Below are positions 25,054-32,572 of a stretch of 64,000 nt of DNA, in pieces. Every line of letters begins with the position of its first letter. Position 1 is the first letter of the stretch. A program made the translations under genes and the position numbers. The stretch is taken from positions 1 to 64,000 of the IMG/VR virus record IMGVR_UViG_3300023235_000008. One strand, given 5' to 3'. The notes below the pieces were generated by a model that was given only the letters and a program-made list of their open reading frames with translations, made no database searches and was not told the origin of the DNA.

Positions 25054-27568
25054 ATGATAGATGATTTAGTGGTACAGTACAGGGAATCAAATGGTGGAGA
25101 AAGCAACGGACAACACATTACTAGTAGTATCCATGATGGTCGCATTGATCAAATGGTGGAGAAAGCAACGGACAACACATTACTAGTAGTATCCATGATG
25201 GTCGCATTGATGACAATGACAATCCTCGGGATATTATCAACAGCGACAACCCAGACGAAATCCGTAGCGATGGACCCGCCAGAGGGACGATACGAGAGAC
25301 TGGTGGAAGTACGGGAACAGATGGTTCCGAACTCAGTGGCGACACTGGAAATGTTAAACGAGAAACAATCACAGATGGAGAACAAGTAAATGGAAACCCT
25401 AGCACTAGCGGCACCACTAATGACGGTGGCGATACTACAAGCACAGGAAGCACTACCGACGACGACACTGGAACAGATGAAGGTGAAGATGGAGACACAA
25501 CTGGAAACGGTGACGGTGGGGGCGACGATCCATCTTCTGGCGATGGTGATGGTTCTGGCACCAGCAATGGCAGTCTAACTGTAACAGTAACCACACGCAC
25601 ATATAGTGAAACAGAAACAGGCGATCCAGTGCTGGTTGATACTAGCACTGACGCCGTTTCGTCACGTTCTAATGACCTTGAAAACAATCGTGAAGTTGTT
25701 ACAACCGATACAACTACCACTAACACATACGAAACCACTGTAACTACAACACAATACGAAGTTGAAGTAACTACTATTACTGATGCAGATGGTAACGTGG
25801 TAAGCATGACTGAATCTGACCCGACAGTTACTAGCCAAGATTCTACCGTTGACCAAACGAGTGATGCAAGTGTTAACAGTGAAACATCATACGAAGAACC
25901 TACATACGAGACAACGCAGCAAGTCGAAACCGTAACGGTTGTAAGTGATCCTGTTACCGAAACCACGTATGAAGACGTAACTTCACGTACCAACGATTTA
26001 GAAAACAATGAAGAAGATGTAACCGTTACTAGAAATTATACGGACGAAACTTCTGTTGATAAACACGTGAAGTAGAACACGTTGATACTTTCACAACCTT
26101 TGAGAATGCGGCGGTAACGGTTGAATATGTTCAAGACGTTAACGTGGTTGTCGGTGATCCTGTGGTTGATGTTCAATCAGAAACATATACTGAGCGTGAG
26201 ATTGATTACGACAATGACCGTGAAAAACTTTCAACATATGAAGATACCACTACAACCACAACGATAACAACCACTACGACCACAACCACTACGCCTGTGT
26301 ATACTGTGACGTATTCAGATGGAACAACGGAAACAGAATATGGCAATCCTGCCGCTGATGTGGTGAGTAGTGATAACGTGACGGTTGATACAAATGTTGA
26401 AGCAATCAATACAGATTACGAATATCCAGAGATTGTTACCACAAATGATACTGTAACGTCAACTGATGTTACTGACCCTGCTGTTACGACCACGTATGAA
26501 GATGTGACTGTTACTGTTCAAAATGAAGATGGAACGACAACTGAAGTCACCACACGTGAGTTCACTGACACAACATCGGTTACAACGACTGTAACAAATA
26601 CAACGACACCAACAACCACGTTGACCTATTCCGATGGAACAACTGAAACGGTGGTTGGTGATCCGATTATTACTACCGAAACAACAACAGATGAAACATT
26701 CATTGAACGTGATGAAATCATTGACCAAGACACAACACCATTCGCTGATGAAGATGCCTTTACTGGTGTAGAAGATCAAGCTACGCAGTTTTACCTTGAT
26801 GATATTCTTGAAAATGATTATGATCTTGATGGTGATGTATTGGATTTGGTATCGTTTGATCAGCCATCTAACGGCACATTGACATACGATGCTAACGAAC
26901 AACTGTTTACATTTACGCCTGACGAGAATTGGAATGGCGAGACATCATTTGGATATACAATCACTGACGGTGACGATGAAGTAAGTTCAACAGTGAACCT
27001 AACGACTGAAGATGATTTAACTGATGAAGGTGAAGAAAACTACGAAGACCCTAATGGCGGTGGATCGGGACACGGTTCAGGTTCAGGAAGTGGATCAGGG
27101 TCTGGTTCAGGACATGGAAAGGATTCTGGCTCTGGAAAAGATAAAGATACTGGTTCAGGTTCGGGTCATGGAAAGGATTCTGGTTCTGGAAAAGGCAAGG
27201 ATAAAGATGGCAAAGATAACGACGATTCAGGACACGGAAAAGGTGGCTCAAAATCTGGAAGCGGTTCTGGGAAAGGAAGCGGCGAAGGCAAAGATTCGGG
27301 AATGGAAAAGAACGATGGGTCTGCTGAAGGCGATGCGAAGGATTCGCAAAAGAACGATGAAGAAGCCGACTTCGTATTTGGATTAGAACGTGATGGTGAT
27401 GTTCAAAACGATTGGGTGAATGCTGAAGCATCTGATGAAAGCAACGGCAATGGATGGACAGATCATACACCTACAGAAGATGATGATACAATGAACTGGG
27501 GCGATGGCGAAAGTAAAGTTGACCTGCCAGATGATTTACACGACTACGATAATAACCATAATTACTAA
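25054..27568 (+). pseudogene. Large acidic Thr/Asp-rich adhesin-like protein with a cadherin-like domain, broken by two frameshifts
   Basis: Three frames join (25054, 25149-26075, about 26064-27568) if a 62-bp duplication is removed and one A is added at 26061-63; ED...ILENDYDLDGD...FTPDENWNGETSFGYTITDG cadherin-like/Ig domain; GSGSG linker. Confidence 0.75.
25086..25209 (+). repeat. Exact 62-bp tandem duplication
   Basis: ATCAAATGGTGG...GGTCGCATTG occurs twice (25086-25147, 25148-25209). Confidence 0.95.
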
Positions 27569-28955: not shown

Positions 28956-30029
28956 ATGAAAATATCGTTTATAGGGCTTGGTAAACTTGGTTTGCCGTGC
29001 GCTGAAGAAATTGCTAAAAAAGGTCATACTGTTACCGGTTATGATATCCAAGGGTTCAAGTCAGATTTGGTTACTAGTGTGGAATCAATCAAAGATTTAA
29101 TACACCACGACTACAGTAACCGCCCTGATATTTTATTTATCGCAGTTCCAACACCCCACGAAGAATCTTATGATGGTCGATACCCAACTGCGCATTTGCC
29201 ACCAAAAGATTTTGACTACACCATTGTTAAAGATGTGATGAAAGAAGTTAATCGTTATAGTAATCGCCAGACACTGGTGGTCCTTGTATCGACCGTGCTA
29301 CCCGGCACAGTTCGCCGTGAGCTTATTGATGTGATTCCACGTAATCGCTTTGTATACAATCCATACCTAATCGCTATGGGAACAGTTGGATGGGATATGG
29401 TCAATCCAGAAATGGTAATGATTGGTACTAAAGATGGCGATGAAACAACTGAAGCACGAGAGTTGATTGATTTCTATGAAACCGTTATGGATAATGACCC
29501 ACGTTATGTTGTCGGAACATGGGATGAAATGGAATGCGTGAAGATTTTCTACAATACATTCATTTCTACAAAAATCGGTCTTGTGAATATGATTCAAGAC
29601 GTTGCTGAAAAGCAAGGCAATATCAATGTTGATGTAGTTACAGATGCCATTGCGCATTCAACACACCGTATTATGTCACCTATGTATATGAAGGCTGGCA
29701 TGGGCGATGGGGGTGCTTGTGTTAAATCTGACTTTAAAATTAATGTAAATGACGCACATATTGAAATCAGCGAGTTATATAACACATTTAACGACACTGA
29801 ATATTATATCGTAGATTCAATGAATTGGGCAGGAACAAAGAAAGACCAAAAGAAAATTGCCGATGTTACTATGCGAGAATATAGCGGCCCATTGTATACT
29901 TTTACTACCGAATCTGGAAAGAAAATATCAGTTACAAAAGATCATTTAATTCCAGTAGAACGAAAAAGAAAACGAATTATTATAAAGGCAGAAGACATCA
30001 AAGAAACAGATAAATTATTTATTTTATAG
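28956..30029 (+). CDS. ugd: UDP-glucose/GDP-mannose dehydrogenase N-half fused to a split-intein N part
   Basis: Rossmann IGLGKLG, IAVPTP, STVLPG, YNPYLI, KIFYN, GMGDGGA, then intein start C255 (29718) with block B VTKDH. Confidence 0.9.
   Translation: MKISFIGLGKLGLPCAEEIAKKGHTVTGYDIQGFKSDLVTSVESIKDLIHHDYSNRPDILFIAVPTPHEESYDGRYPTAHLPPKDFDYTIVKDVMKEVNRYSNRQTLVVLVSTVLPGTVRRELIDVIPRNRFVYNPYLIAMGTVGWDMVNPEMVMIGTKDGDETTEARELIDFYETVMDNDPRYVVGTWDEMECVKIFYNTFISTKIGLVNMIQDVAEKQGNINVDVVTDAIAHSTHRIMSPMYMKAGMGDGGACVKSDFKINVNDAHIEISELYNTFNDTEYYIVDSMNWAGTKKDQKKIADVTMREYSGPLYTFTTESGKKISVTKDHLIPVERKRKRIIIKAEDIKETDKLFIL
29718..30029 (+). mobile_element. Split intein, N fragment (103 aa)
   Basis: CVKSDFKI... 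after GDGGA; YTFTTESGKKISVTKDH; ends in a basic tail at its own stop. Confidence 0.85.
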
Positions 30030-30084
30030 GTGATAACGGTACTTGTTATGTATTTTTGTATAAATAAAGTATAGGAGATACATA

Positions 30085-30900
30085 ATGATAGTAGAAGAAT
30101 TTAGACGAAAATATTCATGGATAGATAAGAAAAAAAACAAGACTGTTTATTGTAGTACAAAGATGATCCGATTGAAATGCGACAAATGCGATCTAATACA
30201 CGAACGAGATTTATCACATTACACCAAGATGACAAAGGTTGATCTGTTTGACAAGGATTATTGTAATAAATGTTGGCGGTCGATATTAAACAACCGTCCG
30301 GAGAAAATAAAAAAGATGTCAGACGCATTAAAAAAGGTGTGGAGTGACCCAAAAAAACGACAGGAAATGTCAATAATGATGAAAAATATTTGTGCTAAAA
30401 CTGGAAGAATGATTGGAGATAATAACCCAATGAAAAATCCAGAAACACAAAAAAAGGTAGGAAAAACCCGTTCAGAACGAATGACAAAAGAAGAAAGAAA
30501 GAAATATTCATTAGGATCAAAAAAAGCATGGGAGGACGGAAAATATATAGGCGCTAATACAACAGGAAAATGTGTTTGGCATGATTACGTCCATTCGAAT
30601 GGTGAATTGTACAAAGTTCAAGGAACATGGGAATTAGCATTTATTAAATGGTTAGATAGAAACAATATGACATTTAGTTGTCATATAGGACGTATCCCTT
30701 ATGTGGATGCAAATGGTAAAGAACGAAATTATTATCCTGATTTTTATGTGAATGAATGGAAGTGCTATATAGATGTTAAATCTGATTACTGGCACAGCAA
30801 AGAACCAACCAAGTTTGATCTACTAAAAGAACAACACCCAAATAATCCAATTAAATTATTATTTAAACGAGATTTAGAAAACTTAGGAATTAAAATATGA
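30085..30900 (+). CDS. Free-standing homing-endonuclease-like protein (NUMOD-type DNA-binding repeats plus PD-(D/E)XK domain)
   Basis: GDNNPMKNPE, KKVGKT; GTWELAFIKWLD...YYPDFYV...YIDVK; own TATAAATA promoter and AGGAG SD; AT-rich. Confidence 0.8.
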   Translation: MIVEEFRRKYSWIDKKKNKTVYCSTKMIRLKCDKCDLIHERDLSHYTKMTKVDLFDKDYCNKCWRSILNNRPEKIKKMSDALKKVWSDPKKRQEMSIMMKNICAKTGRMIGDNNPMKNPETQKKVGKTRSERMTKEERKKYSLGSKKAWEDGKYIGANTTGKCVWHDYVHSNGELYKVQGTWELAFIKWLDRNNMTFSCHIGRIPYVDANGKERNYYPDFYVNEWKCYIDVKSDYWHSKEPTKFDLLKEQHPNNPIKLLFKRDLENLGIKI

Positions 30901-31418
30901 CAACTGAACGAATTACAAATATTGAAATAACTGAATACAATGGTGATGTTTACAATTTAGAAGTGGAACCCAATCATGAAAATAAAGATGATCAATTTTA
31001 TATGTGTGCTGACACTGGAATCGTAATTCATAATTGTCACCCACGTGACAACATTGCTTTACGTTGGATGGCAAAAGACCTAAATCTTGGCTACGATTTG
31101 TTTGATGCGGTAATGAATGCCCGTGAACAACAAGCCAAGAATATGGCAGACAAACTAGTTAGTTACAATCTACCTGTTGTGATTATGGGCAAAAGTTATA
31201 AGCCCGGTGTGGATTACGAAGATGGGTCAAGTTCTATTCTTGTTGGATCATATATTGATGATGTGCAATATGATGTAATCCTTGACGAACCTGCTGTATA
31301 TCTAATGGCACATCCGCAAGATACGTTTAACGAAGGCGCAGAAGATTCTGTGGTTGTTGACCCTTGGCGTCAAGTACGTTCACAACATAAGACATATTGG
31401 TATGGAAATACTAGATGA
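30897..31418 (+). CDS. ugd: Split-intein C part fused to the UDP-glucose dehydrogenase C-half
   Basis: 46-aa IntC with VYNLEV and terminal IHN (31034), then C+1 CHPRDNIAL; MGKSYKPG. Confidence 0.9.
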   Translation: MTTERITNIEITEYNGDVYNLEVEPNHENKDDQFYMCADTGIVIHNCHPRDNIALRWMAKDLNLGYDLFDAVMNAREQQAKNMADKLVSYNLPVVIMGKSYKPGVDYEDGSSSILVGSYIDDVQYDVILDEPAVYLMAHPQDTFNEGAEDSVVVDPWRQVRSQHKTYWYGNTR

Positions 31419-31612
31419 ATAAGGATGAGTTTTGGCGAGCATTGACAATCCCGCCAAATGATCAACGAACATGTTCGAACTGTATTAAGAAGAATGGTCT
31501 TGAATGCTTTATTCAAGATTTGGACATGGCGCATTGGCCAGAAAACAAGTATTGTTCACGTGGATTGCATCTTGACAATAGCGTTGATAAATGGGAATGG
31601 AATGGCGAATGA
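31415..31612 (+). CDS. KEFW-CxxC cassette-family protein
   Basis: MNKDEFWRALTIPP...CSNC...C...C...KWEWNGE; ATGA overlap at both ends. Confidence 0.8.
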   Translation: MNKDEFWRALTIPPNDQRTCSNCIKKNGLECFIQDLDMAHWPENKYCSRGLHLDNSVDKWEWNGE

Positions 31613-32355
31613 AACTAATAGCTGGTGGATGTAGCCTGATACAAGGCGCAGAGTTACAAAATACTGATAATACGTGGACTGGAAATATTGCCGAACGCCG
31701 TGGATTTGAGTATATCAACGAAGGCTATCCCGGCGCAGGTAACAGATATATCGCCAAACGCATTATTGATAGGGTATCAACGATAGACGACAATGTTGCG
31801 GTAATAGTTCAATGGTCATATCTTTCACGCTATGATTACATTTGTTCATTTGATACTAAAGAGCAGAATAGTCCTTGGTATACCCTAACACCCGCACACC
31901 TAAACTTGTCTGATAAAACGGTAGCATCGTGCTTTGGCGATGAGTATGTTCAACGCATCAAAAACTTCGGCACCGACAAGTGGGCAGAAGTTGAATATCG
32001 TATGCTTGATAGTATGAATGAACTTGACAACACACTTACACAAATCCTATTGCTACAGGAATATTTGAATAATAGAAACATCCCGTATATGTTTTCTTGT
32101 GCTGAACGATGGAACGATTTCAAACATTGGAATACATTAAAGAATAATGGTCCATCTATTTGTAGAAGTCTATACGACAGCATTGACTGGAATAAGTTTA
32201 AATGGTTTCCGCACGATTATGGCGACACAGGATTTGTATATTGGGCTAATGCACACAACTTTGAAAAGGGGCAATACGGACACCCTCTTGAAGAAGCACA
32301 TGTTGCCGCTGCTGACATTATGGAACCACATTTTATGGAGATTCTAAATGAGTAA
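31609..32355 (+). CDS. SGNH/GDSL-like conserved phage protein
   Basis: LIAGGCSL...GAGN..I...VQWS..SRYD...GHPLEEAH. Confidence 0.75.
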   Translation: MKLIAGGCSLIQGAELQNTDNTWTGNIAERRGFEYINEGYPGAGNRYIAKRIIDRVSTIDDNVAVIVQWSYLSRYDYICSFDTKEQNSPWYTLTPAHLNLSDKTVASCFGDEYVQRIKNFGTDKWAEVEYRMLDSMNELDNTLTQILLLQEYLNNRNIPYMFSCAERWNDFKHWNTLKNNGPSICRSLYDSIDWNKFKWFPHDYGDTGFVYWANAHNFEKGQYGHPLEEAHVAAADIMEPHFMEILNE

Positions 32356-32572
32356 GGAAAAGTTCTGGAAGTTATTGGCTGGTCCAACTGAAAAGTCTTG
32401 TATGAACTGTCAGTTTAAAGGCGATTATGTTACTGTTAAATGCAGTATTGATGAAAGCCCGTTTTGGGGAAATGGCAAATGGCTATGCTATAACAGAGAT
32501 GTATTGGACCACACTACATATGAACTTATTCATTATAAACAACAATGGGAATGGGATGGTGAAAGAGAATGA
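32348..32572 (+). CDS. KEFW-CxxC cassette-family protein
   Basis: MSKEKFWKLLAGPTEKSCMNC...C...C...QWEWDG. Confidence 0.8.
   Translation: MSKEKFWKLLAGPTEKSCMNCQFKGDYVTVKCSIDESPFWGNGKWLCYNRDVLDHTTYELIHYKQQWEWDGERE

Follow-up and report, generated by a model that had tools for sequence, protein, structure and literature searches.

How does a phage obtain a complete dehydrogenase from a gene that is broken at the codon of the catalytic cysteine, and what broke it? The question is raised by positions 28956-31418 of a 64,000-nucleotide stretch of DNA (positions 1 to 64,000 of IMG/VR record IMGVR_UViG_3300023235_000008; this whole stretch is called the window here), which comes from a T4-like phage of a salt lake (match to the Gp23 major capsid protein, E 9e-100). 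Three open reading frames (ORFs) follow each other head to tail on the plus strand: ORF1 encodes the N-terminal part of a dehydrogenase (N-extein) fused to the N-terminal half of an intein (IntN), ORF2 a free-standing nuclease, and ORF3 the C-terminal intein half (IntC) fused to the rest of the enzyme (C-extein). We observed this three-ORF anatomy, complete intein halves, conserved splicing and nuclease residues, a real stop codon between the first two genes and, in relatives, horizontal movement of the cassette. The explanation that we favor, with good confidence, is a ‘fractured gene’: a nucleotide-sugar dehydrogenase gene broken at its catalytic-Cys codon by a mobile IntN-PD-(D/E)XK-IntC cassette, the intein halves of which would splice and the nuclease of which would cleave. 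A sequence-only reading of the same DNA had proposed such a layout, with a split intein at the catalytic Cys of a UDP-glucose dehydrogenase (UGDH)-type enzyme and a free-standing PD-(D/E)XK endonuclease gene in between. It is borne out by intein models, by intein-free and contiguous alleles and by diverged loci, and every coordinate given in that reading (the ORFs, the Cys at 29718, TKDH, and IHN at 31034) proved correct to the base.

The nature of the broken enzyme can be read from the two outer ORFs. ORF1 (28956-30029; 357 amino acids) consists of a 254-residue N-extein (28956-29717), which carries the NAD-binding and central domains of the UGDH/GDP-mannose dehydrogenase (GMD) family and ends in GMGDGGA, and of the 103-residue IntN (29718-30026), followed by a TAG stop codon (30027-30029). 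ORF3 (30897-31418; 173 amino acids) comprises the 46-residue IntC (30897-31034) and a C-extein of 127 residues plus stop (31035-31418). The N-terminal part of ORF1 matches PF03721 (E 3e-20) and PF00984 (E 3e-13) in Pfam, and phrog_9148, a UGDH family in PHROGs, is found with E 2.5e-71; positions 1-274 of its profile align with residues 1-267 of ORF1 and positions 261-364 with residues 46-153 of ORF3. The two ORFs, on the same strand, jointly cover the whole dehydrogenase in this alignment and also against P0010, a natural intein-free allele of 385 residues that is 79% identical, is collinear with both exteins and stands in for the spliced 381-residue product in our comparisons. TIGR03026 scores 124 bits with ORF1 (E 6e-36) and 149 bits with P0010, both under its cut-off of 189.8, and every score with the equivalog models for the dehydrogenase is far below cut-off. 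The best solved relative is a GDP-mannose dehydrogenase, 1mfz. By its sequence the enzyme is thus a divergent member of the UDPG/GMD dehydrogenase superfamily, for which ‘UDP-glucose dehydrogenase’ is a PHROG label and specificity is not settled; the earlier identification as a UGDH stands as to superfamily and does not as to substrate, since the scores lie below the TIGR03026 cut-off and the closest solved relative is a GDP-mannose dehydrogenase. The cysteine at the break had been called the catalytic nucleophile. In P0010 the segment GMGDGGACHPRD aligns with GFAFGGSCLPKD of 1mfz, the Cys of which is position 268 by counting (GFAFGGSC(268)LPKD), and Cys268 of GDP-mannose dehydrogenase is the residue that we take to be the catalytic nucleophile; the alignment agrees with the earlier claim.

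Both halves of the intein are complete by several comparisons. IntN starts with Cys1 (Cys255 of ORF1, 29718-29720) and is recognized by the NCBIfam model TIGR01445 intein_Nterm (ORF1 residues 255-332, 36.3 bits against a curated cut-off of 24.5) and by PF14890 Intein_splicing of Pfam (residues 267-355, E 5e-8); PF14890 also matches IntC weakly, over profile positions 120-155. Among inteins in the PDB, KlbA and PI-PkoII were the sequence matches of IntN. The class-1 intein residues are all present: Cys1, block B TxxH (T-K-D-H by sequence reading, 29934-29945), the penultimate His, the terminal Asn (Asn46 of IntC, 31032-31034) and Cys+1 (31035-31037), which opens the C-H-P-R-D motif of the C-extein. 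Block F of IntC reads VYNLEVEP (30948-30971), and block G ends in IHN. Cys1, TxxH, HN and Cys+1 are invariant across nine alleles, the intein halves of which are only 38-72% identical (within IntN, Cys1, Thr and His are invariant in seven alleles). A natural contiguous mini-intein of 157 residues (P0033/L168) occupies the same insertion site, and IntN aligns to its residues 1-107 and IntC to residues 113-157. Because the two halves together cover this mini-intein, they make up a complete splicing domain, and the break between them therefore falls at the usual point of endonuclease insertion. Their sizes, 103 and 46 residues, agree with the canonical format of natural split inteins, in which IntN has about 100 and IntC about 35-50 residues (PMC11923092).

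We infer from these sequences that IntN and IntC trans-splice, joining ...GGA to CHPRD. The product GGACHPRD had been predicted from the DNA before, and the natural intein-free allele reads exactly so: the junction of P0010 is GMGDGGACHPRD, or GMGDGGACHPRDNIALRWMA in a longer reading, which is precisely the N-extein followed by the C-extein. As a side observation, MAFFT alignments of the mini-intein with both halves were unusable and were discarded, because the likeness between the second half of IntN (KKIADVTMREYSGPLYTF...) and the start of IntC (ERITNIEITEYNGDVYNL...) led the program to stack the two; this stacking is due to the internal two-fold similarity of the HINT domain.

The gene between the halves, ORF2 (30085-30900), encodes 271 amino acids. 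An AF2 model (pLDDT 77.7) shows, from the N-terminus, a beta unit with a zinc ribbon of four Cys (C32, C35, C60 and C63), a helical middle and a C-terminal nuclease domain (residues ~163-270, 30571-30894). Structural comparison of the C-terminal domain (163-270) returned TnsA as best match (Z 8.8, root-mean-square deviation 2.6 over 107 residues), with I-Bth0305I (Z 6.6), Bax1, VRR-NUC and Vsr (Z 6.0) below it, and Foldseek returned TnsA and T7 endonuclease I. In sequence space, Pfam gave weak matches to Phage_endo_I (E 1e-5, below the curated cut-off) and DUF7487, and PHROGs gave phrog_945 and phrog_15137, both endonucleases, and phrog_22215. The catalytic residues E183, P218-D219 and D230-x-K232 and the four Cys are invariant in six homologues of 46-57% identity. 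By modeled fold and by its E...PD...DxK motif, ORF2 is a canonical PD-(D/E)XK nuclease with predicted activity, in agreement with the class first assigned to it from sequence. Assignment to the Vsr-like/EDxHD class was considered and, although no profile-to-profile comparison with that family was made, rejected, because D230-x-K232 is invariant and TnsA and T7 endonuclease I match above I-Bth0305I and Vsr.

The arrangement is widespread. The three-gene layout was found in many aquatic phage contigs, N-extein-IntN proteins form at least 35 clusters among the best 120 relatives in the protein database, and intein-free alleles of 370-410 residues are many there; the nuclease has 239 clusters in that database, all without a name. 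Every close nuclease relative with a neighborhood that we read (at least 41% identity over most of the length) lies between an IntN and an IntC at the same Cys. Some of the relatives at this site form a second dehydrogenase clade, which is deeply diverged and has a short C-extein (L092-L094 and L114, the latter by a match to the nuclease domain only); compared with the window, the exteins of L093 and L094 are 25-27% identical and their nucleases 43-47%. In a tree of 118 N-exteins the split alleles are patchily distributed: nine changes are required to explain the split state, at least four of them forced by well-supported branches, and the clade of the window contains one empty allele beside four split ones. 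The histories of cassettes and exteins also conflict: of seven UGDH-clade loci compared, L088 has the cassette closest to that of the window (IntC 72%, nuclease 57% identical) yet the most distant exteins (45% and 37%).

The clearest sign of movement comes from a pair of these relatives, L005 and L009, each assembled independently in two metagenomes. Their exteins share 75-85% DNA identity, with about 1.5 synonymous substitutions per site (dS) and a ratio of nonsynonymous to synonymous substitution (dN/dS) of 0.065 in the N-extein, and their cassettes (IntN, spacer, nuclease and IntC) are ~100% identical in DNA. The tract of identity begins ~15-45 nucleotides before the insertion site and ends ~32 nucleotides after it. 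This is the footprint of recent homing with short co-conversion tracts; that the homing was recent follows from cassettes that are ~100% identical in exteins with a dS of ~1.5. Thus, the cassette family is mobile now or was so very recently, as seen in relatives and not in the window’s phage. An ENA contig of 1815 bases, P0002, points the same way. It is a mosaic in which residues 1-150 match the N-extein of the window with 96-100% identity in each block and residues 150-393, including an IntN with a 36-residue insert, are 93-100% identical to P0005. This single contig either arose by recombination, with a long conversion tract, or is a chimera made in assembly.

A different arrangement stands in L113. 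There, a nuclease relative (L113:265-1477), 48% identical over the nuclease domain, lies just 3’ of an intact, intein-less UGDH-like gene, and the C-terminus of the nuclease, ...DWEEMKGRAVI, resembles the gene’s own last residues, ...DWLNLKGRAVNNDE. Here, an endonuclease gene may have been inserted close to the 3’ end of the dehydrogenase gene, with duplication of the gene tail. In the comparisons of a further relative, L090, the flanks of an extra cis-intein were joined for the calculation of identity and dN/dS. The dehydrogenase of this relative (L090:324-2456 and L091, one gene) has a second intein besides the split one with its nuclease at the catalytic Cys; this additional intein is large and contiguous and lies at KVFYN|C...QGN|TFIS.

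How the parts would work together can be outlined as follows. One transcript would give two precursors of 357 and 173 residues; IntN and IntC would associate and trans-splice, yielding a 381-residue enzyme in which the active-site Cys is the very Cys+1 that splicing requires. The nuclease would be translated mainly late, its ribosome-binding site being hidden in a hairpin on read-through transcripts and exposed on a transcript from a late promoter, a logic described for fractured genes (PMC2677866). In co-infecting phages it would cut alleles that lack the intein, near GGxGGx|TGyCAyCC, and the whole cassette would be copied into them during repair. One candidate for the target of the nuclease, the 7-bp inverted repeat TTGTCAC-CCAC-GTGACAA at 31034-31051, was rejected as a coincidence of codon choice; none of the 52 distinct intein-free alleles and none of the other fractured alleles contains it.

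The signals for this expression scheme lie mostly in the spacer of 55 nucleotides (30030-30084) between ORF1 and the nuclease gene. It contains a T4-type late-promoter motif, TATAAATA (30059-30066), 18 nucleotides 5’ of the nuclease start, and the Shine-Dalgarno sequence AGGAG of the nuclease gene (30073-30077). A weak hairpin is predicted at 30045-30086 (free energy -13.2 kcal/mol, z -1.7), in which the Shine-Dalgarno sequence and the first bases of the start codon would pair with sequence 5’ of the promoter; a transcript begun at the late promoter would be without the 5’ arm. Seven of the ten copies of TATAAATA in the window are located within 51 nucleotides upstream of a same-strand ORF of at least 150 residues (rough binomial P ~7e-10), and the motif therefore probably marks late promoters in this genome. 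The ATAAATA core 5’ of the nuclease gene is kept in four of seven alleles, and a late promoter of the nuclease gene’s own, suggested by the sequence-only reading, is plausible on these grounds.

The same reading had made expression of IntC depend on this promoter and on ATGA coupling, and that part is not supported. ORF3 overlaps the nuclease stop by ATGA but has its own Shine-Dalgarno-like AGGA (30885-30888) 8 nucleotides 5’ of its ATG, encoded within the nuclease codons L267, G268 and I269 (Leu-Gly-Ile), all invariant. Between ORF1 and either the nuclease gene or the start of ORF3 we found no terminator-like site, the single one (31034-31051) being inside ORF3, and in allele L088 the nuclease and IntC frames do not overlap at all. 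The junction AGGAAT...ATGA between nuclease and ORF3 is kept in six of seven alleles. Because no terminator-like site precedes the start of ORF3, which has its own AGGA, both halves are most likely made from one read-through transcript, as far as sequence signals indicate.

Four other explanations have to be weighed against that of a splicing, mobile cassette. The stop at 30027-30029 could be an error of sequencing or assembly in what is really a contiguous intein with an in-frame endonuclease domain, a possibility that the sequence-only reading had itself raised against its proposal. ORF1 and ORF3 do share a reading frame in the window, 870 nucleotides apart, but the nuclease is in a different one and has its own start and Shine-Dalgarno motif, and in half of the diverged alleles ORF1 and ORF3 are in different frames. 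Three additional IMG/VR contigs, which come from other samples, carry a sequence identical to that of the window, and contigs of independent salt-lake samples bridge 30027-30029 with zero differences (X6, 29502-30070; X7, 29718-30434; this independent-sample evidence rests on Logan contigs). Moreover, IntN ends at the same position in seven diverged alleles, in which it is only 43-52% identical, and the stop follows a conserved end with an acidic-Lys-Leu/Phe-aromatic motif, mostly TDKL[FY]. The TAG stop is real, and an error at this point is hardly credible. As a separate observation, one Logan contig of run X7 stops at 29701 and the next starts precisely where the intein does, at 29718; this break could be chance at 3-6x depth or an assembly-graph branch from empty alleles in the population. 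Alternatively, the stop is genuine but the locus holds a dead gene: a mini-intein was broken when the nuclease invaded it, its halves have lost the ability to splice, and the enzyme is dispensable to the phage. Splicing in vitro is indeed poor for many natural split inteins (PMC11923092). However, a dead gene would not be expected to keep all splicing residues in the nine alleles described above, nor dN/dS values well below 1 in the intein halves (0.10-0.45, where synonymous sites are unsaturated) and in the exteins (the 0.065 of L005 and L009), nor to recur in at least 35 protein clusters, and no frameshift or inner stop was present in any allele examined. We regard a dead gene as quite unlikely.

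The enzyme might also be reassembled without splicing, the intein halves being merely a dimerization module, as in the split NrdA of phage Aeh1. Non-covalent assembly is documented for a fractured phage enzyme (PMC3045599), but in our case 149 intein residues would remain directly at the catalytic Cys, and docking would not require Cys1, TxxH, the terminal Asn and Cys+1, all of which are invariant; we think this very improbable. The remaining alternative concerns the nuclease, which might have been domesticated or inactivated so that the cassette spreads by ordinary recombination or by descent only. The more distant relatives of the nuclease are encoded by ordinary phage genes that stand alone, away from any intein, as would fit such a protein. 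Against it, the catalytic tetrad and the zinc ribbon are invariant and the nuclease evolves with a dN/dS of 0.09-0.23; the L005/L009 tract ends tens of bases from the cassette on both sides, as break repair predicts; and every close relative examined is at this one site. Loss of homing is, in our judgment, unlikely. A cassette that would splice and home remains the best explanation of the locus.

Several points speak against this explanation and temper it. The support for splicing, cleavage and timing is all comparative, the homing signature comes from relatives rather than from this phage and relies on metagenome assemblies, and all sequencing runs found with the locus are DNA, with none recorded as RNA. 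The AF2 model of the contiguous mini-intein, built from IntN alignment rows only, is of poor quality (overall pLDDT 57.7, and under 35 for the IntC part). In the window the two halves are clearly complementary in charge (IntN +1, IntC -8), a pattern that is not consistent from allele to allele and was dropped as evidence. TATAAATA is not enriched in the window, with 10 copies against 6.9 expected. The hairpin, with a z of about -1.7 at best, is insignificant alone and was found in neither of two alleles; it too was dropped as independent evidence and is kept only as a likeness to published fractured genes.

That likeness extends to most of the layout. The fractured genes of Dassa et al. 2009 (PMC2677866), among them gp41-1, NrdJ-1 and IMPDH-1, likewise consist of three same-strand ORFs in the order N-extein-IntN, endonuclease and IntC-C-extein, with a short spacer before the endonuclease gene that contains TATAAATA and a hairpin (predicted, and weak, in our case), an endonuclease 3’ end that overlaps the start of IntC, a split at the endonuclease-insertion position and T4-like aquatic phage hosts; the resemblance to them that had been noted from the sequence is confirmed by this match. 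The differences lie elsewhere. Whereas the hosts described there are eight DNA-synthesis and repair enzymes, the host here is a nucleotide-sugar dehydrogenase, and the term ‘UDP-glucose’ does not occur in PMC2677866; the endonuclease is a canonical PD-(D/E)XK enzyme here and GIY-YIG or Vsr-like there; and the spacer measures 55 nucleotides against 27-51, the overlap 4 nucleotides against 6-69. The enzyme family itself is known as an intein host: a contiguous ‘udp’ intein allele is present in archaeal and bacterial UDP-glucose 6-dehydrogenases (InBase ‘UDP GD’; PMC4071816, PMC2874743). These cis-inteins share the host enzyme family with ours, a comparison made at family level only, but are contiguous and reside in cellular genomes.

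Among nucleases, residues 163-270 of ORF2 share fold and catalytic motif with T7 endonuclease I and TnsA. Unlike the former, a junction resolvase, and the latter, a transposase subunit, ORF2 has a zinc ribbon and a helical region in addition, and it lies in a site-specific mobile cassette. With I-Bth0305I/Vsr-like enzymes and I-Ssp6803I it shares a restriction-endonuclease-like core fold and a homing role in phage or cyanobacterial genes, putative for ORF2. It differs from Vsr-like enzymes in its E...PD...DxK motif with an invariant Lys and no His-based site (Vsr motif from PMC2677866), and I-Ssp6803I was not among its structural matches. In Aeh1 nrdA/mobE (Friedrich 2007; Gibb and Edgell, cited in PMC2677866 and PMC3045599), a free-standing endonuclease gene also splits a phage enzyme gene, with a late promoter inside a hairpin that hides the endonuclease ribosome-binding site; in contrast to our locus, that system has no intein, its halves assemble non-covalently and its endonuclease is of HNH type.

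The endonucleases given as intein-associated in a survey of 2025 are of the LAGLIDADG, HNH, GIY-YIG, Vsr-like and Endo VII-like types (10.1101/2025.01.02.630785). A canonical PD-(D/E)XK nuclease with an intein is a type unlisted in that survey and unreported for fractured genes. We found no literature on a split intein in the UDP-glucose dehydrogenase family or on DUF7487/PF24308, and with incomplete coverage this is weak evidence of novelty. The earlier suggestion of a novel pair in a sugar enzyme is accordingly compatible with the reports that we found, and is to be qualified in that the enzyme family already hosts contiguous inteins. The locus represents a selfish element of a known kind in a new class of host enzyme and with a new type of endonuclease, and its homing footprint is also of interest. 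We entertain a stronger proposal tentatively, at somewhat less than even confidence: that the cassette is a currently active mobile unit with an unreported type of intein-associated homing endonuclease (zinc ribbon, helical DNA-binding region and PD-(D/E)XK core), which targets the catalytic-Cys DNA in at least two deeply diverged dehydrogenase clades and, because its split falls precisely on the active-site Cys, makes the enzyme depend on trans-splicing. If this is true, phages hold a large natural library of Cys1/Cys+1 split inteins in genes other than those of replication enzymes, and these inteins are diverged and possibly orthogonal.

The locus leaves the general understanding of inteins unchanged. 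It extends fractured genes from DNA-synthesis and repair enzymes to a sugar-nucleotide enzyme in a phage glycan gene cluster, and the identical cassette in diverged exteins supports joint movement of a free-standing endonuclease and an endonuclease-less intein. The dozens of diverged natural IntN/IntC pairs, with their favored format of 100 + 45 residues and small junction GGA|CH, are candidate tools for protein ligation.

Other inteins were noticed in the same genome. Its family-B DNA polymerase gene is also in pieces (L001:1273-2916; G000:C1 ~103037-104680, outside the window), with a cysteine-less Ser1/Ser+1 split intein at YGDTD|S...VHN|SVYFS and a gap of 109 nucleotides without an endonuclease gene; a similar split intein, Aes123 PolB1, is described from T4-like Aeromonas phages (PMC11923092). 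A second break lies upstream in the polymerase gene, where one ORF ends at L001:526 and the next polymerase piece starts at 1273. The portal protein Gp20 (PF07230, E 9e-92; L003:478-3420; G000:C1 ~220634-223576, also outside the window) carries a contiguous intein of ~400 residues (PF14890 at residues 342-733). With those of the dehydrogenase, the polymerase and the portal protein, the genome therefore has at least three inteins.

Near the locus itself, two paralogous small Cys-rich ORFs of 65 and 74 residues (31415-31612 and 32348-32572), both ending in ...WEW[ND]GE..., are interleaved with sugar-modification genes 3’ of ORF3, and the first begins within the ORF3 stop (ATGA). On the other side, a 474-residue ORF (26144-27568) with long Thr runs and a low-complexity tail of Gly, Ser, Lys and Asp is located directly upstream of the divergent gene that adjoins ORF1.

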